This document shows positions 13,422 to 41,430 of a stretch of 64,000 nt of DNA, piece by piece (position 1 is the first letter of the stretch; each line of letters starts with the position of its first letter). Location: assembly GCA_965644265.1 (NCBI GenBank), contig OZ286462.1, positions 22,134,001-22,198,000 on the forward strand, given 5' to 3'. A program made the translations under genes and the position numbers. The notes below the pieces were generated by a model. The model did not search any database. It was not told the DNA's origin and saw only the letters and a program-made list of their open reading frames with translations. Origin of the DNA: Glycera tridactyla (Eukaryota).

Positions 13422-13998
13422 GTGAGTTTCAAACATATTTTGATACACAGTTTACATTATCATTGAAAAGACACATAAACTTATGGATTTTTCTATTGAA
13501 GTCCTTCTTGCTCGACTGGAGATAGCATTGGTTGTGAACTCAATCAATTTGCCACTGTACCTACAAGTCAAGGTTTTGGCTTACATAGGATGCACGAAGC
13601 GATGGATTGGTTTCAGCGGCCAGCACCCCCTTCTAGCAACCGCCTCGGCCGCACTCGAGACCGTGAAATGTGATCAGATTCCGCTTTTTCGCCGCTCAAA
13701 TGAACTCACTTTCCCCGCCAAGCGGCTAGCAGCTAGCTTTCATTCCAGGAAACAAATAATTCGTTCAAGTCAATTAGATTTGAAGATTTAAAGCAGAAAC
13801 CAAAATGATCTCAGTTTGAAAAATCTTTTCTTTCATATAGACTGGCTGGTGCCAGTACCTGGAGTCGCAAGATGAAATCAGCAAGAAGTTCTCCTCCCTC
13901 CTGACAATGGCTGGTTTAGTAACTGATCAGCTTGACCTTGGTGTCACTGATAGAGGAACGGCCACACTTATGTGTACATCATTTACCCAAGAACAATA

Positions 13999-14054
13999 AA
14001 CAGCAAATTATCTAGGATGAGACTGAATCATGAGCTGAGACTTTTTCAAAATAT
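13999..14054 (+). repeat. Left terminal inverted repeat
   Basis: aacagcaaattatctaggatgagactgaatcatgagctgagactttttcaaaatat; its reverse complement is at 40002-40057 with one mismatch. Confidence 0.9.
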
Positions 14055-14305
14055 CTACAAAAAAGGAAAGTGCCCATTTTTTGAAGAAATGATTCATTCA
14101 AGAAATGGTCCTCATCAATATGTAGTATTGGATGAAATCCCAGAAGTTGGAGCTATCCCGCTGGTGAATGTGCAAACCCAGAGAGAACAGGATATTTGTC
14201 AATAAGTGAGTCATCATAAACAAACTCTCACCGACTGTCACCATGTGGATTTTTGCCAGTGAACCTGATGCATTCTGCCTGGAAACCAGGAAAATCACTT
14301 GTCAG

Positions 14306-15352
14306 TCTAACATTGTGACATGACACAACCTTAGAAAGCATGCTGCACATTGCTGCACAATGGACCAATTCATGCCAGACTAACCTTGTTCCATGGCACA
14401 ACCTTAGTCACTATGATGCATATTGCCTGGAAAGCCTGGACAGCCACTTGGCAGACTAACCTTGTGCCACAGCACAACCTTAGAAACTATGCTGTACAAG
14501 GGATCATTATCTGCCAGACTAACCTTGTGCCATGGCACAACTTTGGTCAGCATGATGCATATTGCCTGGAGACCTAGACAGCCATTTGCACACTAACCTT
14601 GTGCCATGGCACAACCTTAGAAACTATGATCTACAGGGGATCATCTGCCAGACTAACCTTGTGCCATGGCACAACCTTAGTCAGCAGGATGCAAATTGCC
14701 TGCAGACCTGGACAGCCATTCTGTAGACTAACCTTGTGCCACGGCACAAACTTAGAAACTATGATGTACAGGGGATCATTATTTGCCAGACTAACCTTGT
14801 GCCATGGCACAACCTTAGTCAGCATGGAGACCTAGACAGCCATTTGCACACTAACCTTGTGCCATGGCACAACCTTAGAAACTATGATCTACAGGAATCA
14901 TCTGCCAGACTAATCTTGTGCCATGGCACAACCTTAGTTAGCATGATACATATTGCCTGGAGACCTAGACAGCCATTTGCACACTAACCTTGTGCCATGG
15001 CACAACATTAGAAACTATGATGTACAAGGGATCATTATTTGCCAGACTAACCACGTGCCATGGCACAAACTTAGTCAGGATGATGGACATTGCCTGGAGA
15101 CAGCCACTTGGCAGACTGACCTTGTGCCATGGCACAACCTTAGAAACTATGCTGCGCAAGGGATTATTATTTGCCAGACTAACCTTTTGCCATGGCACAA
15201 CCTTGGTCAGCACGATGCGTATTGCATGTAAACCTAGACAACCACTTGGCAGACTAAGCTTGAACCATTGCACAACCTTAGTTAGACAGTATGCTACACA
15301 TGTACACCTGGACACCTAGACAGCCACTTGGTAGACTAACTTTGTGCCGACT
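14306..15352 (+). repeat. Left subterminal array: about 15 copies of ctaacc-TTGTGCCATGGCACAA-ccttag with alternating spacers
   Basis: 16-bp perfect palindrome core. Period alternates about 60-63 and 70-77 bp between two related spacer types. Confidence 0.95.
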
Positions 15353-15879
15353 AAGTTTATGCATGATGTTTATAGCCTATCAAATTGGACAATCACTTTG
15401 CAGACTGACAATCTATTATTGCATATCTCAGGTATCCCTAGGCTAGAAAATCACTGCCCCTTAACAATGCTACTATGGAATGTGTTTTTTGGCCAAGCCA
15501 TACATGCTACTCCTGAGTCAAACTGTTGAGTTTGAGTGGACAGATTTGGTCTTTGTTAAAGATGGACGTTCACCAGAGCATGATCTAAGTCAATTAAATT
15601 TCATCTTGGCGGAATGATGAACAGTCATTCAAGGTCTGTTTCAATTATCTGTATCATTGGAAAAAGTCACGAAATGATTCTCTGACAATAGTTAGTGATT
15701 TATACTCTCAAGAAATATTGACAAATGATTAGGTGTTCACAATTGAAGGGGGAATAGTATGAAAATCACAGACACTGTGGGTGTCATTTCGTAGTTGGAA
15801 AATTGCTAATTCAGATGCGTTAGAAAGAGTATCATACATTTCACAGACATACATACAAGTTCAAGGCAACTGACTGTTT

Positions 15880-15920
15880 GCATTTATTCAGAATCAGAAT
15901 CAGAAATGTATTTATTGCAT
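15880..15920 (-). repeat. LINE-type 3' tail, aataaa + (ttctga)n on the minus strand
   Basis: cagaatcagaatcagaaatgtatttatt on the plus strand. Confidence 0.5.
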
Positions 15921-16679
15921 ATGATGTGAATAGGAATTTGAATGAGTAATTGTTTAAGACAAGATGCGAGACAATGTCAATTTCAGCTAATATGATATGG
16001 ATATATACATAAATCCAGCTTGGCAGGTAAAGACAATATTACCAGTTGATAAAAGAGATGAAATAGGTTAGATACTCACATATCATGAATCAATTGAAAT
16101 AAAATACATACATCAATATGGGAATATCCACAAAGTGTATACAAAACCTGAGTTACAAACATTACTGATGAAGGAGATATAAGTGTGGCATATTCAATTC
16201 CAGACTGGTGCATCCAAAACATACCAGCCCAAGTGAAACTAGGGCTCTGTCACAGAGGTGACTTAGATAGCCTTGCCACCACTTTGATATTAAGAATGTA
16301 TGCATTATGGCCAAGATACAGCTAATCTGTCTAAAAAAGGCCACCACCTCCACATCATGCCTTTGTTGACAGTTGGTTTTAATAGAGGTGGTTTACTGGT
16401 GAAAAAAAAGGATCATGGTTGCAGTTTAGGGTGACATTTATAAGCAGGTGGTCTTTATAGAGAGGTGGTCTCTCAAGCAGGTTTGACTCTGCTAGTGCAT
16501 GCATGTGCGTTCTTGTGTGTTGAGGGTGTGTCATATAATTGTAGAGAGAGCAAAATAATGCAGAAGCATGTCTTTGACCAGAGAATCTTGAACAGAGAAG
16601 GAAAGCCAAGGGGAGTGTGAGAGGCCTTACACCATGCAGACAATTAATGAGCCTTGTTGATTTTGCTGTCTCAATTAAA

Positions 16680-16892
16680 TCACAGTTTCAAAGAACTGAG
16701 ATACAAAAATATTCTTTTTTCTTGAATAATTGGGGTTGACATATGTCAAGTCTCAATCCCATAGCTCAGAAAATGTTGAAGTAGTTTGCAGAACAATTAT
16801 TTGTGGAGAGACAGACCAACTGATCAACCGACCAACCCCCAGAGTGACTCCAATATAACCCTTTCAAACTTTGTTTGGGCAGGGGTATGAAT
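16680..16892 (+). mobile_element. Non-autonomous Helentron/HINE-like (pearl-type) element fragment
   Basis: GACA/GACC simple repeats are followed by a 3' hairpin cccc..caaac-ttt-gtttg..gggg. A similar end lies at 17350-17420. Confidence 0.45.
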
Positions 16893-17440
16893 ACCCACAC
16901 ACATACATGGATGCACACACACAAGCACCCACACAATCACACACTCCACATGATCACACACTAACACAGACAAATGTTTGATTCAGCCCTCTCAGTACTG
17001 GAAGTGAGCTATATGCTCCATGGTGAAATCAAACACGGGTGTTACATAATAAAGGGGAGAACAAAAGAAGCCTTGTCAGTTACTGAGAAGCTTACAAAAA
17101 CAATGAGATCAAAGGCAGGAGAAGTGTGTTTATTACAAGGAGGACAATACAGAGCAAATGAGCCAGGTTGGTTGCCTCAAAAATGCTGAAAACTGCATGT
17201 AAAAACCTATAGATTACAGTAAACCAAAAGTTGCAGAGACAAACAAATATGCCTATGCACACCTACCCCTCATGGGTAGCCCACATACCAGAATTGGGCA
17301 GTGTAGCTTCAATACAGTGAACCCAGCACATGCCGCAAATATTGTTTGCGGACAAACAGACGGACAGACTGAATCCAATATGCCCCCTACCTTTGGTTGA
17401 GGGGGGGGGGGGCACAATGATTTACCAATATGCTTGAAGA

Positions 17441-20400
17441 TTATATCTCATCATATTCAGCAAGCACATTGCGCGCATATAATGGGAGTCGACATCCCTT
17501 TGATGTCAGGGCAAAGCCTCCAGAAATTATACACTTCCTGGAGACTTCCTCCAGCCATGCCTCTCGTTCTTTGAGGCATGGCACCCAGGCAGTGGTCATG
17601 CACCCGGTGAACCACTCCAGGGTCACTTCCGTTTGACGAATCGCAACAATCTTTCCTACTTGGGGCCATTCGTCCATATATCTGATTTTATCGACCAAAA
17701 CCATATCACCGATATTGAGTCCTTCATTCCTGGGAGCCTTCTTCCCGATTGTGACAACCTAGAAAATATAGAAAGAATCTATCATCAGGGTGTGGAAATA
17801 CAGCATTAGTCAGGTAAATTTTCGGGGACATCCAGAGATGCTACATGTGCTAATTTTGGGTCCAAGACTAATTCTTGGCTATTGTTCTGTGTAGGGAGTG
17901 AAACTTTATATATTTGATGGATGAGATATGGACAAGTGTAATGTCCACATCGACTTCATTTCTATAGATGTACACTGGAAATCCATAGAACTATGGGCAG
18001 AGTTAATAAGGTAGGTAAAAGTTACATAAAAGTTCGAAACCTTACAAGCCAGCCTACCCTATGACCTCCAAACATCTTGTTTGTACAGATATTGTGATCA
18101 CACATCTCGAGTCTGATACTGACTCTGAAAAAATCAGAAATATCGAATGATTATGAGACTCTGATATAACAGACTCATAATGAGACTGCAGGACTTGATT
18201 CGAGTGTGTCTGTGCTCAAATGTTCATTCAATCCTCTCATAACTAGTCTTGGATAAGGCCTACATCACTCCCCACATAATCTACTGATATTTCTATTGTA
18301 CTGATCATGTAAAACTATTACCTCCCTGATAGATGGACTTTTGATTGATTGATTGACGAACTTTATTTTGGAACAGCATATACAATATATGTTGATATTA
18401 CATCCTTGGTCAGAACATTGTTCACGTCTAAGTTGTGTCAGTGGCAGCAAGAGTATTTTGAATATTACCTAGTCATTTTGTCAAAATATCGGTATATTTT
18501 TGGTAGTCATGTATAATAACTCTATCATGAGTAAGCAGTCGACTTCCTCAGTGATTCAGTATTCACATAAGATATGTAGAAGTATGCAGTGTATCAACTT
18601 CCGATATGTGAACAAAACAATATTCAAAAGGGTCTGAACCGAAGATAAGGATTGTCCCTTAGATATGCATGAATGTTTTCAGTTCAACTTCAAATGATTG
18701 GATAGGCATATATTCAAAATCATGGTAGGACTGGCAGTAATTGTTCCAAGTAACAGCAGCATGACATGTAAAAGCACCCTCGTTCAATTTCAATCTTGTT
18801 TGTAGTTTTTGCAATAGCCTCCTTGCACCAGATTGTTTGTCATGTTCATGTGATCACTCGACAAACTTGCACAAATTTGGCACTCCATACTTGATGACTT
18901 GTTGATGGGTTGTTAACTTCAGTCTAATATGTTCTGGAGTTCAGATAGCTACATGTCCATTGGACAGACTCATTGTTAAAACGTATCTTTTGAGCTTTGG
19001 ACTTACCGGATGTACTTTGTTAGCACAAGGTGCTCCCTCCATTTCCTCAGTCTCCTCTTCCACTCGTTCATTTGTTCTGAGACCGGGCAGAAGCCATTCA
19101 ACCACGACCACCTTTCCATCTGTAAACAATGATATAGCTGATGGAAGTATAAGCTTTACCTGCATATAGGAATGAAATGAAATGTTGGGGTTTTAGGTCC
19201 ATTTTCGGCACTTGAGTAGGCTGAATCAGGCCGCCTGCCAAGGAGGAGCAAAGATGAAGGGTGAAATGTTCCTGCATGGTAGGACCGGAGATTGAACCCC
19301 AGACCCATTGCACACAGCCTAGTATTCTACCACTAAGCCACCAAGGCAGGCCCTGCATATAGGATAGGGCCAGTTGAAATATATGATAATTGGTCGGTTT
19401 GCCAGTGAATCAGTTATGCACCTCAGCACTCAGTCAGCATGAGAGCATTTTCATATGACAAGTGTATGATAGTACTAGTTCATTACAAAGAAGATAATGA
19501 GTGGGTATCATTTTGTTGTTGTAATGTATATTTTACTTTGCACCACCTTCACACAACCTAACCTCAAGGAAATGACCCCAACACATTTTTTTCACTGATG
19601 TTGACAGTCTGCTGACTCCCTTAATTCATTCATTCAAGGCATGCAAGTCAACATAGTCATTGAGTCAGAAATTGAGCATTTGTATATGAGTGCAAAAAAT
19701 TACAAAAAGCTTTTTCATAGCAAGTATGTGGCTTGTCCCCCACTTGGTAACAGAAGCTAGGACATATGAGGTTCATGAGCAGCAAATTGACACTCCAGAT
19801 GATAGGTCTCTTTGAGTTATCCTGATGCATGACATGATATTTTGTCCTACCTTCACACAATCTGTCATCGATGAAATTACTCCACCACATTTTCTCAGCC
19901 GATGTGAGCAATCGGCTTGCCCCCGCAATTGACTCATTTAAGGCCCCCAAGTCCACTTTATCATAATTGCAAAGCACTTGTCGTGGGACACCACTTGGAG
20001 TTGACAAAATCAGTGGAGTTTCGCAGATGTTCCATCTCTGTTGCACAGAAAAAAGACATAATCATTTCCATGCAAAATGGCTAATGCACTGAAATTGCAA
20101 TGAATATTGTGGCAGGATGGTGTAAATTTGAGAATCTTCAATGTATCTGATATCCTCACCAATATCTGTGAAAGCAATCTTCATGATCGAGCTACTGTGT
20201 GATGAAAGATTCTTTGAGGGAATTCATCAAGGATACTAAACACATGATGGTTGGTGCTCCTTGTGACTAAAGTTCATGTTAACATCATCATTAAAGTCTT
20301 TTTTTTGCAATGTGGGCTGGTGCCTTTGTAAGGGTTTGGAATTAGGCAAAAGATAAATTCACTTCAGTAAATTGACATATAAGTATGTGAATCATGACCG

Positions 20401-23400
20401 AATGACATCATTTTATGGTTTATGAGGCTTTCTTCAGAAAGATTTATGTCCACAGCACCATGTTTGCTATGATAAACATATACGCTTCCTTATCCTAATT
20501 CAATTTGATGATATGATTAATGAATATTTATGCCCCTATTGTTGGTTGGGGGCAGGCTGTACCTGCCAAGTAGCTTGCCCCAGCCCAGCATGAAGGCCAG
20601 GGTGTGAATTATGGGTGGGTCTGCCAATGTTTAGCAGTATTCGACCATGTTCGGTGCTGAAACTACTTTTGCAAGATCATGCTAGATGATCAGACATGCC
20701 AACGCAGCTTTGGACTACCACATGTGAAATCCTTCTAGGGTTACATGCAAGCAACAAATGAGCTTGGTAGGTGTCGATTACAAACACACCATGATCAAAA
20801 GTTTAAGAATGATTCCAGCAATACTGACCTTGTCGGTTGACCATTCTTTGTAATTAATAAGGGCCCTGCCATCTCCATTTCGAACAATTTTGAAGGCATG
20901 CGGTGTTGAATGCCCCTTTATGGCTTGCAGGGCATCACCATCAAACCAGCCGCCAACATCATACAGTCCTGTGATGACCTCAGCAGCTGGAGATGGTGAT
21001 GTACATTCTGTCCATACTGTGAGCAACTTGTCTACAGTCTCTGCCGCTTTTCTTGTCAATGCCGTTGACAATCTATCAATGTAAAGTATCACATTTTTGT
21101 AACATGCTGGCATTATAATCAAATAAAAATGTCATTCATGTTTTGTCTCTTGTGCAAGTTCCTTCATATTTCCTTGGATTATTCAGTTTCTTTCAATGAA
21201 TTAAACATCACAATCACATCAAATTAGCACTATGGAATAGTCTTCGAAAAAAACGAGTATATCCTCAGATGTAGTGAAATAGTGATTATAAGTTGATTTT
21301 TGTGTGCTATTTTGTGCTATTTTGTGTGCTTCCAGAAATAGAAGGATAAGAAGCAATGTTTTTTGGTACAGCGATGAATTGATGCATTTCTAATAAACAA
21401 GGGCAAAATACAAACTCCACAAGATTTGGAGATATCAGTTTACACTGCACATCCAGAAACAAAGGCTTTATCTCATTTATCTGATCAAATATACAGATAT
21501 TGAAAGATCCAATTGAGAATTGGAATTACTTTGATAGCACGTCTATACCCGATAGTCAGCCTCTAGTTTGGGAAGTGTCATGAACTGATGGTCAAGGCAT
21601 GATACTTGCTGACTTTGATGTTGGAGGTTTGGTTTCAGGTTGATCATCACATGAATGTGACGTTTTCAGTGATGTATCAGTTGTTGAGTATTGCGGTTGA
21701 TACTTCACAGCTAAGAGAGAACTAAATTTCTCATGATCTCTTCCTCCAATTCTTGATAAAAGGATGACTATATGACCGTTGGGTGAGAATGCAATACCAA
21801 ATTCCAGAAACACACAATACCCAACTCGGCCTTCAGCCTTTTGACAACTGTTGAAATTTGCACCTCGTTTTATACTGCGTTTTTACGTCATGACCATATA
21901 GCCCTACTACATGATATCATGATTGAGTGTATTTCTGGAGTGACATTCAAGGAGCCACATTAGTCCAAATGATACCTCCTGATGCCAAATTCACACCATA
22001 CATGTTATCAATTCAATAATACATACATTTGAACAAATACGCACATACAGAACTAGTTGAAAATCATATCATTTTGTGCACAGATTCTCACCTTGAGAAA
22101 ATTTGGTCAATATCAGTATGCGTATGTCCTGTCATCAAGAATGACACTTTCACTTTCCTGAACAGCCCCATCTCAACCAATAAACACATCATGGCTAACA
22201 CAAACCTGCAATCATTATTAACACATGATTACATACTGAGAGTGACGTGCTCATCCCAGTAATTATGACTGATTCAGGTACTGTTAGATATGTCAGCAAC
22301 CAAGCATGTAAGGTTAGAATGAAAGGTTAGAATTTTTTGGTTACACACACACACAGTGGCACATATGATCAATTATCATCCGATGTCGAGTCTAGTGTGT
22401 TGGGAAGCTGCTGCGACCGGCCTGCCTTGGTGACATGCTTTACTTCAAGGGGGATTAGCGCTACGCGAATCCGCCCCCTGATTGGTCGCTTTGATCACGT
22501 GACTTTTTGAATCGGCGGGATTTTTCAAACTTTCAAGGCTTTCAAATGTCATTTTCTTTTGTTTTTAAAGTAAAATTGGATGATAAATTCAGAATGCATC
22601 TCATGCTGGGCACGTGAAGGCTGTATAGGCCTCATAGCAGTACCTGAGATGGCACAAGTGGCCGGGGATGGCTACTTGGCCTTCACGGCCTCCCCATGCC
22701 CGGCACTGGATGTAAGCCAAGAGAATGTATGTATGTTTCTTACCTATTTTTGTTTTCCCGAAAGCAGTTGTCCATCTGGAGATACAAAACTGGTGACAGA
22801 GAATTTCTAAAGTGATACAGAGTGTTCAATATCACATGGATTGTCATATTAGCATCATGAGGAAATTGGCCAAAGTCAAAGTATCCAAAAATACCGCGTC
22901 CATGTGCTATCACACCAGTCAAATGGACTTTCAGTTTCCACATAGTTGAGGAATACTTGGAAATATTCGCAAATCTTGGCAGGTACAGTTTACTCTGGTC
23001 CATCCCATCTGTTATGATGGACAGGTATTTTTCAGGATGGTCCTTGGCCTTTTGTGCATGCTTGGCATATTTCACTCTTTCATCCCTGCAACACAGTTGT
23101 TGAATTAGCCATCATGTGAATGCAAACAACTCCTCACACAATCTCATCACTTGAATGGTTGGTTGTTATCTAAATCTCATCCGCCCCGTGCAAGCTTATT
23201 CAGGGTCCTGTGAAATGCCTAGGGTTTCAGCAATTCAGGCCTATTTTCAATTCACTCATGTTCCTAGGTGTCATCCACAGACTCTCTTTGTGTGCATTAT
23301 CCATTGACTCAGATCTGTGCCTACCAGTGTATGCGAATTACCAGCACTATTTTTTCATATTTTTGGTGAAGATACTGCGGCATGGCATGACAGTCTTTTG

Positions 23401-24753
23401 TGCTTAGTAGATAGAATCAACAAATGGAAATCATCCTGTACAGGTTTTCTGTGCAATGGTGATTCGATAAGCTAGAGGAACGTATTTCTGAATGAACTCT
23501 GTGTGAGTCTATGAGTGTGTATGTGTGTGCATGTGTATGTTTGCCAACTCAATTTAGAACAGAGGTCAAAGTGCAATCTTCAATGTACAAAGTGCTTATT
23601 TAGTAATAAGAACACTGGTTGGGCAAATCTCACATATGCCTTTGCCTCCTTTTCCATTACAGAAATGGAAAAAGGGCTGTTGTTACCAAACTTGTAGGAC
23701 GGAATTTTAACAAAAGATTACTTTTTGAGCAAAAACATCGGAAATACTCATGCACAATTGTGGGTCGTATCAAACCTTTGTTGCTTAAGATGACAATCAC
23801 GTTCTTTCAGGAGAAGTCGCCGCTCATTCTTGTCTCGAGTGCGCTCAAGTATCTGCTTTATTTCTGTACATGGATCACATTTACTGAACCGGGAAGTCTA
23901 CAATTCAAAAAAGAAATCGACCTTTCAATCTTGCCAGGCAAATTTTTTGGATTCCTTATCAACCGTTCTTAAAATCTCATGTTCATGGATATCTTTTCTG
24001 AACATTTGCCAATAAGGAATACTGCCAGGGGCATCCCTGGAGAAGTATTCTAGTGTAGTTACAAAACTGTATCATGCACATCTTAAGATGACAAGGAAAA
24101 TGTACCTTGGGAATGGAAACATTAGGTCTTTCTTCTCGCCATACCCGAAGAAAGTGTGTTTGGGATATACTGATGGAGGTCTCTCTTCTCATCATGCCAT
24201 AGATGCTCCATTTTGTATAAGAACTAGGAAGGTTGATCTTCACTGAATCTGGCATCTGTAAAAAAATTTGAAAAACAGACCTTGAAATTGACAGCATATC
24301 ATTGAAATGATGATATTTCATTACTTGCAATTTTCCATTTTGATATTATTCCCCTGGGCATTAGAGAACCTAGTACAATGGACACCCACCAACAACATAC
24401 AGATTGATGCACTCGATACATGTACCGTGTCACCCACTAAATCTCATCGGATCTGAGAATTCAACAGTTACAAGCCACATTTCTACGATGATAATTCTAG
24501 GCACACAGTCAATCAATCAATTTCAATCCCATGATCACATCCTCATCATTATTGTGATGATGAAACTATAGAAATAGTAATTAGAATCATACATGAAACA
24601 TCAACAACAAAAATCATTTGCTGAGTCATTATGAGAAACTCAACTTGTCACCACATTTGCTGGCAAAGAGATCCAACCAGGCCACAGCTTGTGTCACATT
24701 ACTCGTACAGTTTCCTTGACGAGGGCCAGTGGGGTCATTCATCACAGCACCAT
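17441..24753 (-). CDS. Sola-like (Sola1-type) DDD transposase, at least 9 coding exons, 565 aa recovered, 5' exon(s) uncertain
   Basis: Exons 24753-24644, 24255-24106, 23897-23776, 23085-22744, 22205-22092, 21072-20829, 20037-19851, 19119-19007 and 17758-17441 join in frame (1700 nt) with no stops. Motifs: AWL..GDKMP, RFSKCDPC, DGMDQ, LYLQMDNCFRENKN, FLMTGHTHTDIDQIFS, GHSTPHAF. All junctions are GT-AG except the donor at 24643 (TTGAGT). Confidence 0.85.
19172..19351 (-). mobile_element. tRNA-derived SINE with 13-bp target-site duplication
   Basis: Minus strand: A box GGTGGCTTAGTGGTAG, B box GGTTCAATCTCC and a (catttc)n tail. cctgcatatagga is duplicated at 19159-19171 and 19352-19364. Confidence 0.85.
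21560..21900 (-). repeat. Dispersed repeat, inverted copy of about 35450-36000
   Basis: The reverse complement of 21830-21900 (tatatggtcatgacgtaaaaacgcagtataaaacgaggtgcaaatttcaac) matches 35488-35540. The tttggtattgc..catatagtc block is also shared. Confidence 0.7.
22440..22530 (+). promoter_or_regulatory. CpG-rich promoter-like island inside a transposase intron
   Basis: GC box ccgccc 22471-22476, inverted CCAAT (attgg) 22481-22485, E-box tcacgtga 22495-22502 and ggcggg near 22514, in otherwise CpG-poor DNA. Confidence 0.5.
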
Positions 24754-24849
24754 CTAAGGGATAGAAAATGTAAGATTGATGTCTCATGTCTCAATGAAAA
24801 CTCGGGCAGCCTGTCTTATCATATAGTGAGATTGAACCTGAAAGTGAGG

Positions 24850-27800: not shown

Positions 27801-30800
27801 CCCAGGTTCTTCCCTAGGTGGACTGGCATCAGAAAAACATTTTTTCACTTCTGTTCAAACCATGGTCAATGAAAGATCACAAATGAGGCTCTCAAATCGG
27901 AAGAGAGTTAAAAAGGCAATGGGCACCTCGAGGATTTGAACCCAGTTCCTCCCATCAAGCTAGGGAAAATGACCAACAGCAGCGCTCCTACTCCATCAGC
28001 TATCTGTCCCTATTGGTTTCTGCTCGACTGATCTTATACTTGACTCCATTTTGAATATGCTCAAGGTTCTTCCCGAGGTGGACTGGCATCAAAAGAACAT
28101 TTTTCACTTCTGATCAAACCATTGGTCAATGAAAGATCACAAATGTGGCTCTAAAACCGAAAGGGAGTAGAAAAGTCAATGGGCACCTACAGGATTTGAA
28201 CCCAGTACCTTCCATTCAGCTAGGGAAAAAAAGTGATACCTGCACTCTTACTCCATGAGCTATCTGCCCTCATATTTTTTTGTTTGACTAATATCAGACT
28301 TGACTTTATTCTGGATATGCCCAAGGTTCTTACCCCGGTGAACTGGCATCACAAGAACATTTCGACTTTTGTTCAAGCCTTTTTTGAGAGAAGGATCACG
28401 AATGTGACACTCAAATCAGAAAAAAGTAGGAAAACCATGATAGGCACTAGCAGGATTTGAACCCATCATCTTCCATACAGCTGGAGAAAATAAACAGCAG
28501 CAGCACTCTTACTTCATGAGCTATCTGTGCTTGTAGGTATTGCTTGACCGATATCATACTCAACTTTATTTTGAATATGCACAAGGTTCTTCCCTAGGTG
28601 GACTGGCATCAGAAAAACATTTTCCACTTCTTTTCAAACCATTGGTCAATGAAAGATCACAAATTTGGCTCTCAAATCGAAAGAGAGTAGAAAAGTCAAT
28701 GGGCACCTACAGGATTTGAACCCAGTACCTTCCATACAGCTGGGGAAAATGATAAACAGCAGCGCTCTTACTACATCAGCTATCTGTCCCTATTGGTTTC
28801 AGCTCAACTGATCTTATACTTGACTTCATTTTGAATATGCCCAAGGTTCTTCCCTTGGTGGACTTTGATCACAAGAACATTTTGACTTTTGTTCAAGCCA
28901 TTTTTGAGTGAAAGATCACGAATGTGACACTCAAATCAGAAAAAAGTAGGAAAATTATGATAGGCACCAGCAGGATTTGAACCCATCACCTTCCATACAG
29001 CTAGAGAAAATGAACAACAGCAGCACTCTTACTTCATGAGCTATCTGTGCTTGTAGGTATTGCTTGACCGATATCATACTTAACTTTATTTTGAATATGC
29101 ACAAGGTTCTTCCCTAGGTGGACTGGCATCAGAAAAACATTTTTCACTTCTGTTCAAACCATTGGTCAATGAAAGATGACAAATGAGGCTCTCAAATCGA
29201 AAGAGAGTAGAAAAGGCAATGGGCACCTGCAGGATTTGAACCCAGTACCTTCCATACAGCTAGGGAAAATGATCAATAGCAGCACTCTTACAACATCAGC
29301 TATCTGTCCCTATTGGATTTTGCTTGACTAATATTATACTTGACTTTATTCTGAATATGCCCCAGGTTCTTCCCTAGGTGGACTGTCATCAGAAAAACAT
29401 TTTTCACTTCTGTTCAAACCATTGGTCAATGAAAGATCACAAATATGGCTCGTAAATCGATAGAGAGTAGAAAAGGCAATGGGCACCTGCAGGATTTGAA
29501 CCCAGTACCTTCCATTCAGCTAGGGAAAAAAAGGAATTCCTGCACTCTTACTCCATGAGCTATCTGCCATTATATCATTTTGCTTGACTAATATCAGACT
29601 TGACTTCATTCTGAATATGCCTCAGGTACTTACCATGGTGAATTGGCATCACAGGAACATTTTCACTTTTGTTCAAGCCATTTTTGGGTGAAAGATCACA
29701 AATGTCATGATAGGGACCTGCAGGATTTGAACCCATCACCTCCCATGCAGCTAGGGAAAATAAACAACAAAAGCACTCTCTCAATGAGCTATCTGTCCTT
29801 ATATTTTTTGGCCCGCCTGATATCATACTTTCCTCTATTCTGAATATGCCCCAGGTTCTTCCCTAGGTGGTCCGGCATCAGAAGAACATTTTTCACTTCT
29901 GTTCAAACCATTGGTCAATGAAAGATCACAAATGTGACTCTAAAATCGAAAAAGAGTAGAAAAGGCAATGGGTACCTCGAGGATTTGAACCCAGTTCCTC
30001 CCATACAGCTAGGGAAAATGATCAACAGCAGCGCTCTAACTACATCACCTATCTGTCCCTTTTGGTTTCTGCTTGACTGATTTTATACTTGACTTTATTT
30101 TGAATATGCCCCAGGTTCTTCCCTAGGTGGACTGGCATCAGGAGAATATTTCTCACTTCTGATCAAACCATTGGTCAATGAAAGATCACAAATGTGGCTC
30201 TCAAATCAAAAGAGAGTAGAAAAGGCAATGGGCACCTCGAGGATTTGAACCCAGTACCTTCCATACAGCTAGGGAAAATGATCAACAGCAGCACTATTAC
30301 TCCATCAGCTATCTGCCCTTATATTTGTTGCTTGACTTATATCAGACTTGACTTCATTCTGAATATGCCCCAGGTTCTTCCCTTAGTGAACTGGCATCAG
30401 AAAAACATTTTTCACTTTTGTTCAAGAAATTGTTGAATGAAAGATCACAAATGTAGCTCTCAAATCGAAAGGGAGTAGGAAAGTCAATGGGCACCTACAG
30501 GATTTGAACCCAGTACCTTCCATTCAGCTAGGTAAAAAAAGGAATTCCTGCACTCTTACTCCATGAGCTACCTGTCCTTATACTTTTTGCTTGACTAATA
30601 TCAGACTTGACTCCATTATGAATATGCCCCAGGTTCTTACTTCGGTGAACTGGCATCATAAGAACATTTTCACTTTTGTTCAAGCTATTTCTGAGTGAAA
30701 CATCACAAATAAGGCACTCAAATTAGAAGAAAGTAGGAAAATTATGATAGGCACCTGCAGGATTTGAACCCATCACTTTCCATACAGCTAGGGACAATAA

Positions 30801-31100
30801 TCAAAAGCAGCGCTCTTAATCCATGAGCTATCTGTTCTTATATTTTTTGGCCTGACTGATATCATACTCTACTCTATTCTGAATATGCCCCAGGTTCTTC
30901 CCTAGGTGGTCCGGCATCAGAAGAACATTTTTCACTTTTGTTCAATCCATTGTTCAATGAAAGATCACAAATGTGGCACTCAAATTGGAAGAAATTAGAA
31001 AAATCATGATAGGCACCTGCAGGATTTGAACCCAGGACCTTCCATACAGCTAGGGAAAATAATCAAGAGCAGCGCTCTTACTCCATGAGCTATCTGTCCT
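24850..31100 (-). repeat. Satellite of 24 x about 260 bp, each monomer carrying a tRNA/SINE-like A box and B box
   Basis: 24 copies of caggatttgaa(c/t)cc (reverse complement GGGTTCAAATCCTG, B box) at about 260-bp spacing. Upstream on the minus strand is gatagctcatggagtaagagc (A-box-like). Two monomer subtypes. Confidence 0.95.
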
Positions 31101-31295
31101 CAGGTTGGGCCAGGCTAAAATTCTGACCTTCCATATCTGGTATACACTCGTATAAGCACCTAGTCTGACAATCATTCTGCTTTACAATATCTCGTATATG
31201 CACCTTGTTCTAGGACATGCCAGAGTTAAATGAAAGATTGATATATTATATCAATCAGTTCAATGTCTTCAATATCAATGCAATATGTGTTCCAG

Positions 31296-34200
31296 GCTGA
31301 ACCCAGGATTCGACAAAAGCGCAGGTCTGATGATGAGATCCCAGTAGAGCCGGAGATCCAAGTGAAAAGGATCAGAATGAATCCTGCCGGTGATCTCGAC
31401 ATCACTGCAGATGTCCCTCCTACAGATGAAGATCCGATCAACCCCCGATGGAGCGAAAAGTATATAGGTAACTTGATATCTAACATAGCTCACTTCCCAT
31501 ATTCAAGTTTTCCTATTCATTATGTACAACACTGGAGCTGGATTTCACAATACAATGAACAGTATCCCTTGACCACTGTAATAAGTGTATGGTAAGCATA
31601 CATTCCATGAGTAACAAATTTATTCATTTGTCGACAGTTAGATAAAAAATAATGTCTTTGATAAGCCTGGTGATATAGGATGGAATGCATCTTCAAAATG
31701 AATAAGTAGTGCTTTTACAGTTAAAGACTTTTTTTTGCAGGTAGATACAGAGTTCAAACGAACCAACTGATCCCTCCGCATGAGGAGCTACTGTGCAGAC
31801 CATTGAGGGAGAAATGGGTGAGGGAGATCAAAGAAATGATCGCACAGAGGAATTCTGAGGTTATTACACGGCTACCTGTTATGATCGATGGTACCACTAA
31901 GCAGGAATTCAGATCAGAGGTGGGTGTCATATATTTGGAGGCTATCACCCATCCCTTGAACAAAATTGTGATATACAATTAGAGATTGAGTGCACAAATT
32001 TCAGTCATGCATCTTCAATCAAATTATAAAGAGCTGTATTACGATATTCATTGATGCAATCAAGATGTACGCTGACAATATATTTCCATGTTTTGTTGAA
32101 ACCCACTTTCAACTTTTCTTCTATCCAAGACATTCATAGTGCATCCAAATATTTCATCACCTACAACATTGGTTAACACAATTTTTTTTTCACCGGATTT
32201 AGTCAATGTGACTTCTCTTCTTTTGAAAATGAGCTATTGTTAGAAATTGAGTTATCTGTTATGACCTCACACTTTCAGAACATATCCGTATACAAATTCA
32301 TGACACTGGGGGGCAATCATGTGCGATCAGCCATACATGAGCTCCTTAAAGAAGAGCCACTGAATGAAAAAATCAGGTAAGTTGAGTCAGTAAGGTATGA
32401 ATATCATCGTCTTTGTTGATGTTGTTGCCATTGCCTTGCCCTTGTTATCCTGGAAGTGTAACTGTACACCAGCATTCCTGATTGACAATGAATGACTTTC
32501 CTTTACCCACTTCTATTGAGTGCATCTCCGAAAGTTGCCCCTTGGCTACTCATCTTCTAATGAACAGGTTAAGAATCACATATAGAAGCATCTTCCTGGA
32601 CTTATATCTATGGGACCATTCCCAAAAAATAATTTCATCCTGACCTTATCCAATCTCAAATACATATTATCAACCAGAATGTCATGGGATTTTCATATAG
32701 GAACACTGATATAACTCTCATGATATCCTATTTCAACATTGATCTAGGGCATCAACACTTATCTCAAGTCTGCAATGGGTTGCTCTGATGTTTGAATGGC
32801 TTATTTGTAGAACAATCGAAGTCGATTTATATGTTGGTCTGGACACTGAGGAGGCAATTGAAATTGGCTCCCGCCATAATGCATCCAGCAAATGCTTAGG
32901 CGTGACATTTCAAGTAAGTATGAATGCTCAATATTGTGGATCTTCTATGACCCAATAACTATTCATTCTCATCAAAACGTGATATTTAGACTAAAATGCT
33001 AGGTACGCACAATGACAGTTGATGTTCACATCATCCCAAATAGTTGACACACAATACATCACAAACTCTGTGCTTGATATTCAAAATGTACATCTGGCAT
33101 TTTGCCATCTTCCACCTGAAGACAATCGCCAGATTTTTTTTCAACAATCTCAATCTTATATTCTATTGTTAGCTTTATGTTCACGTGGAACAACAAACCT
33201 GCAGGCTATCCAGTTGCAGCAGACAGATGCTGATTTTTTTGTATAATTTTGTAATGGAAATAGTGTGCCCAATTTTCTTTCGACACACTCTTAAGTTAGA
33301 TTGCATTCGCTTGGACAACTGGGGATCATTCTCTCTGTTGACACCACTCAACAGCCTTCTCTCCGCTTTGTGTTCACACTGCTGTGAAACTATGCCTGCG
33401 GACAACTGTAGCAATTGTCTTGGATTGATTTTCACATCAACATATTCTTTTTTAGGACAAACTATATGTCACAAGGAAGCTGGCCTCTCTGGAGAGTGGA
33501 GAAAGTGCCCGGAAGAGAATTGCAAAGGCGATATCAGACATGGAGTTTCAGGTGGGAATTCCTACTCAATATGTGAAATGTTCAGCCCATGGATTAAACA
33601 AAATCAGTGCTGAAATAGCTGCAGCAAACAGACACTGGTTGAAGGTCATTGAGTTGATACTGTGAGTAAGTGTGTGGGCGGAGGGGGGGGGGGTAGTGTC
33701 TTGAAGCAAACGGATACCTCACATGTGACTTGGGAAAAGGAAAATGATGAATATCATCACAATTCATTCATACATGAGAAATTTTAAGTCACCGTATCTG
33801 AGTGTGATTCAGAGTTGCTGCTTGGTGATGGCTACTGTTCATTTGGTAAGTTTTGAGGGGGAATACCGAACAGATCAACAACGCGACACAATTCCAAGTC
33901 ACATCAGTACCACTCACCTTTGTTGTCTGACTGTCTGCCAGTCGGTTGACTCATATAGCTCAGTACAGAGATTGAACCAGATTTAGAAAATGGACAAAAT
34001 TCTGGTCTGGAGTATCACAAAAAAACCAAGGCTATACCACACTTACTAACAAGGTGATAATCTAATGAAACACAGTAGTATGTGTTGATAGATCATGCTA
34101 CAGAAGATGAAACTACCAACAAAATTGAATTACAGCTGTTAATTTAGCATGATATGGTCAGATATGAATTACAAGTTGTTGAGCTATTAGGTAACCCCAC

Positions 34201-37200
34201 AAATATGAAAAGCTGTTTTGGAGGCATTCAGTGTTTCGATTTGGCGTAGATGGCTCAGTAGAGTATCCCACATATATGCTCAACCCTCACAGAACATGGC
34301 TGGTAATACTTCATTTGGATGGGAAAATATGTTTGTGAGTATGTGTGTGTGCATGTGTGTGTGTGTTTGTGTGTGTATTAGTGGCAAATGGAAGTTGCTT
34401 TAGAACTTGACATAACAAGGCTTGGGAGCTAGTGCAATGTGTGGCACATTGTCATACATATAGGCGGTATATTGGAGAAATTGGTTATGATTGTTTACCT
34501 CCATCATGAAATTCTTCTTAGATAGATTATTTGTCTGTTTCATGCAAAAGGAGGTGAACATGAACTCGATCACAACATTGATGAGTGTCTGCAAGTACTC
34601 AGATGCAGAATGGGAGCTTGTAAGGAAAATAATCTGCAATTTTGAGGCACAAAATGCATTTGGTGCAAGTATACCCCAAAGGGTAAGAGCTTCTTCATCC
34701 TCAGCATCATCCTTATCTCATGATACTTTTTTATCTGACTTGGTCGAATATTAGGGCATGAATATAATGATATACATTTATAAATTGCATCAGACAGGGA
34801 TGAAATGAAACTAGGCATCTATAACAATTATCTGCCAAATGCTATTGTGATTTTTGTCCATTCAGTGAGTCACTTGGCATAAATCTCCAGATAGGTGAGA
34901 TTGTATCGGATTTTCTGACCAGTCATTTCTTTTGAATACATTGATTGAGGGCTTCCAACAAAGAACAAATACCAACATTAGGTTTCAGAAGATGAAACTG
35001 TGATGATAAGCACTGAAGTGAATCCTCTATGAGTGCTCACATCCTACCGGAACATAGATTTGGATCAGAAATCAAGAAGTTCAAAAGCAGCTGATTGCAA
35101 ACTATAGCTGAATCCATATGAATATTGTAGACTGGAGAGATGCCTGGACAGATGCCTACAACTTCTCCTATGTTTGCAGATTTTCAAAGTGATGCAGGGA
35201 ATCTGCACGGACAGTCGGCGCCATTACATGCAGCGAGTCGCCTCAGGAGAGCTCTCACTCCAGGCTGCGATAAAGGTATTTGTGTGATCTCCAAGACTGC
35301 TGCATGTGTCATGGATGATATTACTAGTATAAGATGAAGATAGAATTGCATTAATGGCATCAAATGATAGGAATAATTGCTCTCTCATTGTATCTCCAAT
35401 TATGTTAAAATGGTGACTGTAGCAGTTGCGGCATGCTTCATGAACTTTAGCCTAATGAATCATGAAACTCACAATATTATAGCAAGAATATATGGCTGTG
35501 AAGTAAAAGCGCAATACCAAGCGAGGTGTGAATTTCACCGGATGTCACGAGGACGAAGGTCAAGGGACATCGGGAGAAATTCACACCGAGTTTGGTATTG
35601 CGTTTTCACTTTACAGCCATATAGTCTTGCTTTCATCACATGGATTATGGAAGAAATCGCTCGAAAGCAGTTCTCAGCCAGCTGTGAATACTTATAACCT
35701 GATACTTCCATGTGATAAGTGGTGCCCTCATACATACAGCTTGGTTGGTTCTATAAGAATGATATGTACGATATTGTGGTGCCCTTGCAATGGACATGGG
35801 TGGGATCATTGGGAGCACCTCTCCCAGGATTACAATGGGAGGTAACACGTCATGCAAGGTTCCCAGACTGAAATTATCACAAGTATTATTATCCCCGAGT
35901 GGATGTTCAATTCATGATAACACTTTCACAAATAAACACCTTGCATCAAAACAGCCAGGAACTTCAGATGCGAAAACAGAAGCATAGAATGGTGGATGGT
36001 AGACATATAAGATCTAATAATTGAAGGGAGAAAATATCTGGAAGAAAAAGAATAGATATGAGGCCATTTAGTGTTTTATTGCATAAATCTCCTGCAGTGT
36101 ACAGAATGATTGGTCTCTGTAAATGGACAGTATACAGAGAAGTATATCATCATAACTCATTATGATATGACTATAGTCTCTACAATGAGAACAAAGACAA
36201 ATCCATAAGTACAATAAATAGATAATGCTTGTAATACTCATGTTTGTAGGCATATGTATGATAAGACCTAGTACAGACACTTCAAGTGAAATGCGGATGA
36301 CTATGAATCTCATTGCATCTTTCTTGCAAAACAAACACCATGGCATTATTTTTTCTTGATGTTGTAGGAGATCGAGAGGAGGAAAAAACTTGTACAGCTG
36401 AAATCATTATTTGTGCAGCTGACGAGGGTAAACTCTTGGGAGGAGGCACAGGCTGAATTCCCAAATTTCGCAAGGGACGATAGGCTAGAATCGTTCATGG
36501 GTAATTACAATATGGAATCATCATGCATCAGAAAAGTAGGGCTTAACCGAAGTATTTCCTCCCCCAATCATTCAATCTATCATTCCATGGAAAATATCAT
36601 ACAAAATCTTTGATATGGAAGTATGATCTATGCAGAGATTTGATCTTCCAAAAAAGATTGAATCTTTTTGAATATCCCTACTTGCCTTTCCTTAAAATAA
36701 ATTATTAAATGAATTAAAGTAAGAGACTTATCACTTAAACAGGCACTATGCCAAAACTTTCTGACCGTTCATTCACTGTCCGGTCTCTTAGATGGAGCAG
36801 GATACCTTAATATCAATCCTAGTGTTTGTGAAATGCAATGCACAAAATTCAGATAAAGTCGCACTTGTCCTAAGCAAGACTTGTACTAGGCAAGAACTTG
36901 TGCTAAGCAACATATTTTTGCTCATCCCATCAGAGTATTTTTCACATTAATTGATGTCTACTAAGCATGATCTTGCTCTAAGCACAAAGTATCTTCACAT
37001 CCTGAAGCTTCATGCTTAGGAAAAGTTTGATAGTACATCATCGAATACAATTCCCTGAAATAGCTGAAATAAATCAGTGTTCATTGAATGTTGTCTATCA
37101 GTGGTAGCATACTCTAATGCGATGACCAACATCAGGTCAGTCAATGAATATAAGGGATCCATGATTGATCCAACACAGTCTTTCACCCTGATTTCTTTCA

Positions 37201-37498
37201 CATTGATCATTAAAAGTGAAGTGTTGCCCAAGATGATTCATTATGACTCAATCAATAAAACCCCTCTTTTACAGACATTGGACTGACCCGGGCCACTGTC
37301 CCACAAGCGTTTGTGAATTTTTGCACAGAGGCAGTGAATGGAGTGGAAAGAAGTGTGACGGTCAATGTTGATGTATTGTTGGGTGGCATCCGCTGTGATG
37401 ATGAAAAGATAAAAGAATTCGTCGAGAAGAAGAAAAAAGAAATAACAGAACATGTGGAAAGATATTTGCTTTTGAGAACAAGAACATTCGAGGAATAA
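31296..37498 (+). CDS. ParB/Srx-fold protein, 9 coding exons, 410 aa recovered, start exon uncertain
   Basis: Exons 31296-31467, 31741-31919, 32279-32376, 32811-32913, 33456-33551, 34551-34682, 35180-35275, 36368-36500 and 37275-37498 (1233 nt) all have GT-AG junctions, match in phase and contain no stops. FMTLGGNHVRSAIHELL and LYVGLDTEEAIEIGSRHN parallel ParB YxIIAGERRxRA and VRxLxDEEAxExALxEN. Confidence 0.82.
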
Positions 37499-38450
37499 AT
37501 AGATCAAGAGCAATGACAAATACACACTGTCGAGAGACATGAATTGTTAAGTAGAGTAGTGATGGTATAACATGAATAATTGTCACATGATGAATATCAA
37601 ACACATGATAATTTTCTGGAGGAGAGATAGTGGATGTCTTTATTTGTATCACTGAATCAGGAGATCAATTGGGAATATACTATTGGTCCACAGTATTTGG
37701 TCTATAATTGTTGGGGTTTTCTAGTTTGTTTTTCTTCATCAATTTCTGGAGACTTCGCTGAGAAAAGTGTATGTGAGGTGCAATATAATAAGTCTGAGGT
37801 ATTCTACTCTCTGCTTCAACATTTAAGAGGTGATGCAAATTTTTAATTTCAGATATTGCTATATTGTGGATTGGGTGAATGCCGAATATTGCTAATAAGT
37901 GGTTCAGCTGTTTGCGGGATACAATGGACCAGTTTTGGGGCTGTGGTGCAAAAATGAACTTTGGGTTCAGTCGAGCCATTCATATTCTTCATAGGTGTTG
38001 CAATTGTCTTTTCATCTGGCAAGATTTTTGAAATTTCAGATGACAGTTTCTACGCATCAGTCTTACATTCATTGTTTTTCCCTGATATGTACTCAAATTT
38101 GAGTTTGCCCTTCAGTTGGTTGCATTCTCACACTGATGATTTTTGCAGAGCTGGTAATGCCGGTCATTTCCTATATAGCCTAGATAGATACCTGTGCCTA
38201 TTGATGTAACTCATGAATTCTTTGGTCACCCATCGGGCATTGTTAATTTCAACACAAATATTTTTAGGGGTAGATTTTTATCAATAATCCTTTTCATGAT
38301 ATTGACGAAAATGTTTGTGTCTTTTTCAATTTCGGTTTTTTTGTGAAAGCATGTCCAATCAGTAATGAATATGTCAGTATTGAACGCATCTTGGGAGAAA
38401 ATCTTATGTGAACAGATAGTTATACATTTGCATTCTGATGAAATTTTGTG
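37030..38450 (-). mobile_element. Degenerate CR1/L2-group LINE ORF2 relic(s)
   Basis: Minus-strand traces WVTKEFMSYI, LENPNNYRP, IALDL and GSIMDP occur in ORF2 order. Many stops; the last ParB-like exon lies within this span. Confidence 0.45.
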
Positions 38451-39302
38451 ACACTTTCAGCATGCAAAGATGAGACCTGGGTCACTCAGACCTGGTTTGA
38501 GTGTTCGCTACCTATCCTATTGCTCTATTCTACAGATGCTATCTATCACAATTTTCGAGTGATGGCTCACTCTTGTCATGATAATAAAAGTAAAGCTATC
38601 ATCTCGACTTCTGTTTTCATCCTCTATGATTGTTTCAGAACCGCCTGTTTATCCGATAACAGAAATGACACCTCAAGTGTCTGTGAATTTCATACATTTT
38701 CACCTTTCTTCAGGAACCCAAAAGAGGGAGTCTTGAATGATCCCACCCATACCCATTGCATGGGCATCACAATATACCACAGATGGAGCTGACAGGATGT
38801 TAAACCCCAACAAAACAAACTAAACAATGTTTTCACCTACCATTAATAGCTCAAGATCTTTGCTTAGGCAGTAAGACATCTATATTCATGCCTAAGCTCT
38901 TCAGAGAGATGAAAGAGTTTTCTTTACATTATACATTTTACTGAACATGATCAACACTAGTGTTTTTAGTTATTGGTCATAATTATATATGACATACAAA
39001 TGGAGACTGTACCATGGTACATTTTCAGCCCTTTGAATCCAATGCACTGTGAAAAGGCTTGATCCTATGTTCACTGGATGTTACTAGGGTCAACATTTAA
39101 TGAGAGGAATTACACCTTGAGTATCTGTGGATTCCATACACTCACCTTCCTTGGGAATACAAGGAAAAGGAGAGCTGAATGATCAGTCCCATGCCCATTG
39201 GCTTCATGATATAGCTCACAAGGTGATAATAAACCACAACAAACCAGCATATGATTGATCCACAGCCAGTATTTTCCTAGGCCTTGACTTTGAACAGTAT
39301 GT

Positions 39303-39843
39303 TGACTAACCTTGTGCCATGGCACAAGGTTAGTGAGTGATCAGTTGTGATCTGCAGCATTGTAACTAAGGTTGTGCCATGGCACAAGATTAGTTCACAG
39401 TTTCTTCCCTGGACTCAGCTCTGAACATCTCCAGCATGGTAATATGCACCATAGTGACTAAGGTTGTGCCATGGCACAAGGTTAGTCCACAGTCAGTTTC
39501 CTCCCTGAACAAGCTCTGGACATCATGTTGACTAAGGTTGTGCCATGGCACAAGGTTAGGCAGGGGAAATGTCCATGAAAAATCTGCAGCATAGTAACTA
39601 AGGTTGTGCCATGGCACAAGGTTAGTCAGCAGTTCCCTCCCTGGCCCAAGCCCTGATTATCTGCAACATAGTGACTAAGGTTGTGCCATGGCACAAGGTT
39701 AGGCAGGGATTCATACCTGAAATGATCTGCAGTAGAGTAACTAATGTTGTGCCATGGCACAAGCTTAGTCGACAATTAGTTCCCCAATGGCATAGGCTCT
39801 GTACACAACGCTGATGAAGGTTGTACCATGGCACAAGTTTAGT
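39303..39843 (-). repeat. Right subterminal array: 8 copies of ctaagg-TTGTGCCATGGCACAA-ggttag (inverse of the left array)
   Basis: Flanks are the exact reverse complement of the left-array unit. Spacers ending catcatgttgac and ctgcagcatagtaac match the two left spacer types in reverse. Confidence 0.95.
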
Positions 39844-40001
39844 CTGCAATTTGTCCCTGAAACTCCCTGAAGTGACCAACTAATCATTGCCATTTCTAAC
39901 AGTACAATAATACAAGACAGAAAAACTGACATGAGGTGAGGTATCTCAAAATGATCTATATGACTATTTTCTGGAATAATGTGATGTCCCATTTTTTTCA
40001 A

Positions 40002-40057
40002 ATATTTTGAAAAAGTCTCAGCTCATGATTCAGTCTCATCCCAGATAATTTGCTGTT
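40002..40057 (-). repeat. Right terminal inverted repeat
   Basis: atattttgaaaaagtctcagctcatgattcagtctcatcccagataatttgctgtt, followed by AATA at 40058-40061. Confidence 0.9.
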
Positions 40058-40466
40058 AATAGCATATTGCATGGATATTTACAGCTTCTAGTGAATAAAT
40101 TCAATGTCAAAATACCTCCCCCCCCCCCCAGCTACTGCAGCAAGCAGAATTGAGTGAAAACCATTTCAGATTGGAAATACTTGCTAAACACTCCAGAATA
40201 TTTTTAAAAGAGGGTTTCAACAGATATCTGTCCCTGAATCACTTCTCCACAAAAGCTGCAGGCAAACTATGTTTGGCAATTTTTTGTATTTGAGCCTTTT
40301 ACAGACCAAGCTAATTGGGAAATTCAGAGAGTAATCGACAGACGAACACTCTGTCAGGCGGACCCAATGACAGACAGACAATCAGATAAAGCAGTAGACG
40401 TACAGCGGGACAGCCATATGGACATACATTCATCAGGACAGACAGACAAACTGACTACCAGATATT

Positions 40467-41244: not shown

Positions 41245-41430
41245 TGTGCAATGACTCTTTCATCCAATTGACTGACGGAAGTTGTATTAAGGTCAACTCC
41301 TCACCTGAAACCTGGGTGATCGCTAAGTCATCATGTGAACGTATTGGTGCACAGCTCATAACGCTCGCTGACGAATGTAAAGGGAATGCAGTGCTCGACC
41401 ATATGCGGACCCTGTATCCAACATATTCAA
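41245..41430 (+). CDS. C-type lectin gene copy 2, exon 2
   Basis: Acceptor gttcctttcag|, 186 nt, donor a|gtgagt. Paralog of 4671-4856. Confidence 0.88.

Follow-up and report, generated by a model that had tools for sequence, protein, structure and literature searches.

Giant DNA transposons have to locate and pair termini separated by tens of kilobases, by means that are not known. Two algal systems described in 2025 are the closest precedents for the locus considered here. Sola1-1_Ec32, from the brown alga Ectocarpus, is a 21.5-kb element with AACCG...CGGTT termini and a 4-bp target-site duplication (TSD) biased to end in A, and it carries, on the strand opposite to its transposase, a ParB-methyltransferase gene with a product of 1104 residues (PMC12477816). 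In the red alga Bostrychia, the gene PAG3 of a Plavaka element encodes a protein with a ParB-like N-domain and a 2-oxoglutarate (2OG) oxygenase domain; tandem inverted-repeat arrays adjoin the gene, and the protein has been proposed to bind its own transposon (bioRxiv 10.1101/2025.02.11.637652). Here we analyse a 26,059-bp region of the Glycera tridactyla genome that occupies positions 13999-40057 of a 64,000-nucleotide stretch of contig OZ286462.1 (assembly GCA_965644265.1, positions 22,134,001 to 22,198,000 of the forward strand; hereafter the window, to which all coordinates refer). Judged by its sequence, the region is one Sola1-group cut-and-paste DNA transposon inserted at a putative AATA site; it holds a transposase gene, a second spliced gene (the accessory or partner gene) and two arrays of a palindromic site near its ends. 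The explanation that we favour, with modest confidence, is that the arrays of this Sola1 element are bound by a protein that the element itself encodes, more probably the accessory protein, and that this binding pairs the distant ends.

An initial annotation of this DNA had proposed a giant Sola-like transposon with a ParB-like partner gene and parS-like end arrays, and had suggested that the combination might be new. Published work, however, already includes a giant Sola1 element whose accessory gene is ParB-like (PMC12477816) and a ParB-like protein proposed to bind inverted-repeat arrays in its own transposon (bioRxiv 10.1101/2025.02.11.637652); with these precedents for both the combination and the central idea, the element is not unprecedented. 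It is of interest as a compact and testable case of end pairing, which offers one sharply defined 28-bp site in 22 copies near two ends together with two candidate binding proteins: the arrangement of the putative binding sites is unusually clean, and the partner family is nearly unknown.

Boundaries, arrays and genes of the element

The element is delimited by terminal inverted repeats (TIRs) of 56 bp, of which the left (13999-14054, plus strand) begins AACAG and the right (40002-40057, minus strand) ends CTGTT. The two are complementary at 55 of 56 positions, with weaker similarity running on to about 95 nt at 82%, and a 43-nt TIR probe finds two places in the 64-kb window, both of them ends of the element, where 0 are expected. 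AATA stands directly outside either end (13995-13998 on the left and the identical 40058-40061 on the right) and is taken as a putative 4-bp TSD, although a lone 4-bp match seen in a single copy is weak evidence. The repeats and outer AATA reported in the initial annotation are borne out by these coordinates and by the probe. An empty site, which the same annotation had proposed as a check and which would read ...aagaacAATAgcatattg..., was looked for and not found in the window, nor did the TIR probe reveal a second copy of the element there. A dispersed repeat family with 70-81% identity lies on both sides of the element (2608-3762, 12516-13611 and 60600-61429; also 4654-4878 and 41228-41452), and it gives no empty site because no copy spans the insertion point.

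Inside the TIRs lie two arrays built on the 16-bp perfect palindrome TTGTGCCATGGCACAA. With up to two mismatches allowed, the window contains 22 occurrences of this palindrome, where 0.04 would be expected, and all of them are confined to 14313-15200 or 39312-39836, with none elsewhere. The left array (14313-15275, plus strand) comprises 14 good copies and a degenerate fifteenth at 15260, each set in a conserved 28-bp core at a spacing of 59-76 bp; the right array (39312-39836, minus strand) comprises eight copies of the core, inverted relative to the left. The core reads CTAACC-TTGTGCCATGGCACAA-CCTTAG, and because these flanks of the palindrome are polar the two arrays can be recognised as mirror images of each other. 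The first palindrome begins 314 bp from the left end and the last ends 165 bp ahead of the right TIR, in agreement with the mirror-image arrays originally placed about 300 and 160 bp inside the TIRs. Between the left and right arrays the 28-bp core is 92% identical, whereas the flanking spacers are 34-47% identical; the core has been kept while the spacers diverged, and the pattern is therefore the signature of a protein-binding site rather than of a recent duplication. We infer that a dimeric protein, itself a product of the element, may bind the 28-bp cores. A scan of metagenome contigs from JGI for paired palindromes found none.

The transposase gene lies on the minus strand at 17441-24255 and is represented by an open model of eight exons and 535 codons (24255-24106, 23897-23776, 23085-22744, 22205-22092, 21072-20829, 20037-19851, 19137-19007 and 17758-17441), with its ATG at 24255, its stop at 17441 and GT-AG junctions of good consensus throughout; the exon at 19137-19007 was picked by frame and splice score alone. 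Two of the exons match Pfam DUF7869 (E 1e-25 and 6e-14), a family of which no mention by name was found in the literature searched. The three aspartates of a DDD transposase fall in the blocks ITDGMDQ, LQMDNC and GHTHTDID, which in fuller form read TDGMDQSKLYLP, QMDNCFRENKN and GHTHTDIDQIFS. The other two frames of the spliced transposase and accessory genes hold 24-41 stops each (24-36 in the accessory sequence). By eye, the last transposase exon (17441-17758) looks like a small module of the SH3/chromo-barrel type (IGDMVLV...VGKIVAI...LEWF.G); Pfam returned no hit for it, and nothing in the related loci matches it.

Upstream of the model lies a candidate exon of 48 codons, T1 (24644-24787, minus strand). 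Its homologs in relatives stand ahead of MP[DN]S: one in Sola1-1_Ec32, the other in the open reading frame 4717-4935 of the related locus L072, in which the stretch runs on into the next exon without a break. At the end of T1, the expected GT donor is replaced by TT at 24643-24642 (GACAAG/TTGAGT), and 388 nt further on a good acceptor stands immediately before the ATG of the next exon. The window lacks any counterpart of a Cys-rich N-terminal region of about 190 residues that Sola1-1_Ec32 has and that is also seen in L072 (3424-3687). Given its TT donor and absent N-terminal region, the copy may produce a transposase shortened at the N-terminus, or none that functions. The spliced DDD transposase of the initial annotation is accordingly upheld as regards its DUF7869 matches, its catalytic blocks and its open eight-exon frame, whereas the donor of T1 departs from an intact gene.

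The transposase was placed by comparing it, by eye, with curated Sola sequences printed in the supplements of two papers. The window blocks TDGMDQ..LP, DNCFRENKN and GHTHTDIDQIFS line up with FDLEK..P, DNCGGQNRN (YSDNCGGQNRN) and GHTQS of Sola1-1_AP, and they do not align with the patterns of the Sola2 or Sola3 representatives. The Sola1-1_Ec32 transposase fits better than that of Sola1-1_AP (MPNS.., F.RIW..EFP, MDGANQ..VVP, DNTVAENKN, GHTHIQIDQIFS): the window and Sola1-1_Ec32 have MP[DN]S, F.R[VI]W..E.P, DN...ENKN and GHTH..IDQIFS in common and are identical at about 24 of 58 residues (counted by eye) in the block from the second to the third aspartate. The element combines a homologous DDD transposase, a 4-bp duplication seen in one copy and 56-bp TIRs of the form AACAG...CTGTT, and it is on account of the shared catalytic blocks, the AAC.G termini and the 4-bp duplication ending in A that we place it in Sola1. 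The giant Sola-like element first proposed can thus be specified as Sola1-like, given the DUF7869 matches and the agreement of its blocks with curated Sola1 sequences.

Among the ENA assemblies, long eukaryotic contigs carry relatives of the core transposase exon that are 45-63% identical to it, and one related family has at least 16 members. For the comparison of loci we took the closest family (L003, L071 and L073, with 12 kb upstream walked, and the second copy L072) and the multicopy family L004 and L068-L070. Transposase exons are present in all related loci fetched. The internal parts of the related Sola1 families are 92-99% alike, and their termini were not reached or are not clear. An inverted pair in L003 (1850-1912 and 15645-15707) was considered as element termini and rejected, as it consists of two copies of an unrelated short repeat, adjoined by tandem units of 140-177 bp and absent from the window.

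The accessory gene (31263-37498, plus strand) diverges from the transposase gene on the opposite strand. Its model has nine exons and 452 codons (31263-31467, 31741-31919, 32279-32376, 32811-32913, 33456-33644, 34551-34682, 35180-35275, 36368-36500 and 37275-37498), with GT-AG at all junctions and an open frame, as expected from the second intact spliced gene that had been annotated. The predicted protein has a basic, nuclear-localisation-like N-terminus with KRR/KRIR runs, and exon 3 encodes the motif GGNHVRSA, to which we return below. An exhaustive HMMER search of exon 2 against 1.84 billion representative proteins yielded only two weak fragments, P0001 and P0002, each from a eukaryotic contig. 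P0001 lies on a 768-bp contig (L001), on which the region homologous to the partner spans 235-680 and includes an equivalent of exon 3 beyond an intron at the same position as in the window. P0002 is a protein of 99 residues with the equivalents of exons 2 and 3 in one reading frame and no intron (ENA ERZ25072999, a 416-kb contig). The window protein, P0001/L001 and P0002 align well over L.aPP..lMCRp...WV.eIK...LPv.I and Y.F.TLGGNH, and we therefore consider the partner gene to belong to a real, conserved and very rare family. Word-indexed searches with P0002 or with a profile of the three sequences found no further homologs, and neither did scans of JGI metagenome contigs and viral contigs; protein databases all but lack the family, about 15 billion sequences having supplied just two members besides the window protein.

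At the centre of the element, a tandem array of 260-bp units, about 24 in number (24850-31100), takes up all the space between the two divergent gene starts. A tRNA-like B-box (GGTTCAAATCC) on the minus strand of the unit points to a satellite derived from a short interspersed nuclear element; ARAGORN and Rfam searches found no tRNA or Rfam match in the window, the satellite included. The satellite may have displaced 5' exons of the transposase or may act as a shared promoter region. Among the relatives, the multicopy Sola1 family has a short array of units of about 162 bp upstream of the transposase core (L068 6958-7536; L004 7108-7518), and a long array of the same unit lies 8 kb downstream in L068 (18635-20390) and loosely recalls the window's central satellite. 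A repeat with a 71-nt-arm hairpin in an intron of the partner gene (35476-35636) has a translated frame that resembles the stretch 21595-21882 in a transposase intron, and the two probably form a small nested repeat family. Outside the element, the long open frames at 47112-53526, 54193-57739 and 62706-63837 have reverse-transcriptase-like translations and the appearance of long interspersed nuclear elements (LINEs); one frame is 1031 residues long, and a 307-residue frame upstream may belong to the same LINE-type element.

Proposed pairing of the distant ends and alternative readings

In the reading that we favour, the DDD transposase would, as its family membership suggests, cut at the AACAG...CTGTT termini and duplicate 4 bp on insertion, while a dimeric protein encoded by the element would bind the 28-bp cores, mark the two distant ends and bring them together. 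Of the two candidates, the accessory protein of 452 residues is the likelier binder, and it may serve as a subunit for DNA recognition and for recruitment of the transposase, a role like that proposed for the ParB-like proteins of giant algal elements. We favour the partner as the site-specific binder because the transposase of this copy lacks the usual Cys-rich N-terminal region. This copy may rely on other copies for its transposase. The sites, their selective conservation, the two open genes and the affinity to Sola1 are seen in the sequence, whereas the identity of the binder, and all that would follow from binding, we infer.

Several points weigh against this reading. One copy of the element is visible, and its mobility, its duplication pattern and its very unity all rest on that single instance. 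The transposase copy may be impaired or inactive, to judge from the TT at its first donor and its lack of N-terminal exons. Domain searches, which covered single accessory exons and the fragment homologs P0001 and P0002, detected no DNA-binding domain in the accessory protein in Pfam, NCBIfam or PDB sequence comparisons. In many superfamilies it is the transposase that binds subterminal repeats, so that no role for the partner is required. Nor did a link between the partner and this type of transposase emerge elsewhere: the DNA fetched around the related transposases, which has short flanks and falls short of the element ends, contains no homolog of the partner, and P0002, for its part, has no recorded DUF7869 gene within 10 kb. 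The initial annotation had suggested looking for linkage of the ParB-like gene with Sola-like transposases in other genomes, and no linked pair appeared in the related loci reached or near P0002; limited as the power of this comparison is, it is clear that transposases of this clade do not always travel with the partner.

The alternatives that follow are not mutually exclusive. The one that survives best, a real possibility that nonetheless falls short of probable, is that the locus holds a recently inserted Sola1 copy in which the satellite has replaced 5' exons of the transposase and the first donor has mutated, and that this copy moves only in trans, if at all. The TT at 24643-24642 in place of GT, in a coding stretch that is contiguous in L072, fits such a history, as do the lack of any window homolog of the relatives' N-terminal exon and the position of the 6.2-kb satellite, which begins 63 bp upstream of the T1 ATG. 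The state of the remainder of the element argues otherwise, since the eight other transposase exons and the nine partner exons are open with canonical junctions, the TIRs differ at one of 56 positions, the flanking repeat is intact, and an ATG stands exactly at the start of the exon that follows T1 (T2).

Somewhat less probable, and in our judgement unlikely, is a classical architecture in which the arrays are ordinary subterminal repeats bound by the transposase, and the partner is a captured or lineage-specific passenger or regulator with no role at the ends. The missing Cys-rich N-terminal region bears directly on this reading, for that region is the usual place of site-specific DNA binding, and a passenger gene would not readily account for a partner that is open across nine exons and conserved elsewhere. 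Transposase-bound subterminal arrays are nevertheless common, as in the En/Spm, Ac and P elements, and both the related transposase loci without a partner homolog in the DNA reached and the partner's lack of a recognisable DNA-binding domain are what a classical element would lead one to expect. If the partner does not bind the sites, the element would still stand as a well-delimited giant Sola1 reference copy.

Proposed resemblance of the accessory protein to ParB

The binding of the arrays by the accessory protein, as favoured here, does not of itself say what kind of protein it is. By eye, the order of its motifs resembles that of a ParB/Srx N-domain: L.PP..L.CRP, a helix, LPV, Y.F.TLGGNH.R.A and I.V.LY.GL..EEA....HN. 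The central motif varies within the family, reading GGNHVRSA in the window, GGNHTRT in P0002 and GGNHIQS in L001, where Q replaces the arginine. The Srx-type motif is GGCHR, and in GGNHVRSA the H and R are separated by a residue that the HR or RR of Srx/ParB-type proteins lacks.

The searches lend this resemblance no statistical weight. The accessory exons, P0001 and P0002 gave nothing relevant against Pfam and NCBIfam, with no match to ParB_N or a member of its clan even at E values up to 10; PDB sequence searches returned no ParB or Srx match, and a tblastn search of plasmids with P0002 returned no match. A local hhalign comparison of the three-sequence family with 57 YubM-type plasmid ParB sequences (N-domain and helix-turn-helix) taken from bacterial genomes gave a probability of 0.2% and E 0.28, which is not significant, although in that alignment GGNHVRSA sits on GGRRLAAL of plasmid ParB. 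AlphaFold2, run on P0002 with an alignment of three rows, produced an unusable model with a mean predicted local distance difference test (pLDDT) score of 38. No enzyme domain was found in the accessory exons with Pfam or NCBIfam, and the methyltransferase motif [DNS]PP[YFWH] occurs nowhere in the element. Of the ParB-like motifs first noted, then, the resemblance by eye around GGNHVRSA stands, while Pfam, NCBIfam, PDB, plasmid tblastn and hhalign give it no statistical support; the ParB/Srx label is neither verified nor refuted, and we hold such a fold, proposed from sequence motifs, to be a tentative possibility.

The arrays had likewise been called parS-like. They do consist of 16-bp palindromes, but the parS consensus is tGTTNCACGTGAAACa, with which TTGTGCCATGGCACAA shares no sequence. 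That the partner is a true ParB-family clamp, dependent on cytidine triphosphate, which loads at the palindromes as at parS and then, by sliding or bridging, holds the ends together or opposes silencing, is improbable: the motif order, the placement of GGNHVRSA on the plasmid sequence and the algal precedent of giant transposons with ParB-like domains and inverted-repeat arrays next to them speak for it, and they are outweighed by the null domain searches, the non-significant hhalign score, the unusable model, the extra residue between H and R, the Q of L001 and a palindrome unlike parS. About equally improbable, in our view, is the fuller proposal that the partner, at 452 residues, is a far-diverged protein of ParB/Srx fold which stands alone, loads on the 28-bp sites, bridges both ends and replaces the transposase's missing DNA-binding N-terminus; if this is true, the element would be a eukaryotic transposon of two components, in which a clamp of the bacterial-centromere type synapses ends 26 kb apart.

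Comparison with known systems

The likeness to bacterial ParB-parS lies in the clustering of 16-bp perfect palindromes and in a possible GxxR-type motif in the partner; the differences are the lack of statistical protein similarity, a palindrome unrelated to the parS consensus, the absence of a ParA partner and the setting of a spliced nuclear gene in a eukaryote. A functional analogy, with no claim of homology, can be drawn with the PIF/Harbinger elements, whose transposition takes two proteins, a transposase and a Myb-like DNA-binding partner. Here, too, a second protein would recognise subterminal sites and recruit a transposase that has no site-specific domain of its own. The PIF/Harbinger transposase is unrelated, however, its target duplication is 3 bp, and its partner is of the Myb/SANT type.

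The algal systems are nearer. As in both of them, the accessory gene of the Glycera element sits opposite or beside the transposase in a giant transposon, which here, as in Plavaka, also contains inverted-repeat arrays; the algal ParB-fusion proteins, however, join a ParB-like N-domain to an enzyme domain that modifies DNA or chromatin, whereas the partner described here has 452 residues and no enzyme domain. Like PAG3 of Plavaka, it is a candidate accessory binder of inverted-repeat arrays within its own element. Plavaka, however, belongs to a different transposase superfamily (CACTA/EnSpm-type), the ParB-like domain of PAG3 is detectable and fused to the 2OG oxygenase, and its arrays adjoin the gene rather than being mirrored at the termini.

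Sola1-1_Ec32 is the closest match, with homologous transposase blocks, termini of the form AAC.G...C.GTT, a 4-bp duplication ending in A, giant size and an accessory gene on the strand opposite to the transposase. The two elements differ in their accessory products, which in Sola1-1_Ec32 has 1104 residues with a ParB-like domain and a DNA methyltransferase and here has 452 residues with neither a methyltransferase motif nor a detectable domain; in their TIRs, which are imperfect and 282 bp long in Sola1-1_Ec32 against 56 bp here; in the palindrome arrays, of which none is reported for Sola1-1_Ec32; and in their hosts, the window element lying in a LINE-rich genome. Should the partner bind the sites, what was proposed in 2025 for brown and red algae would apply to another host as well, and to a partner protein without an enzyme domain.

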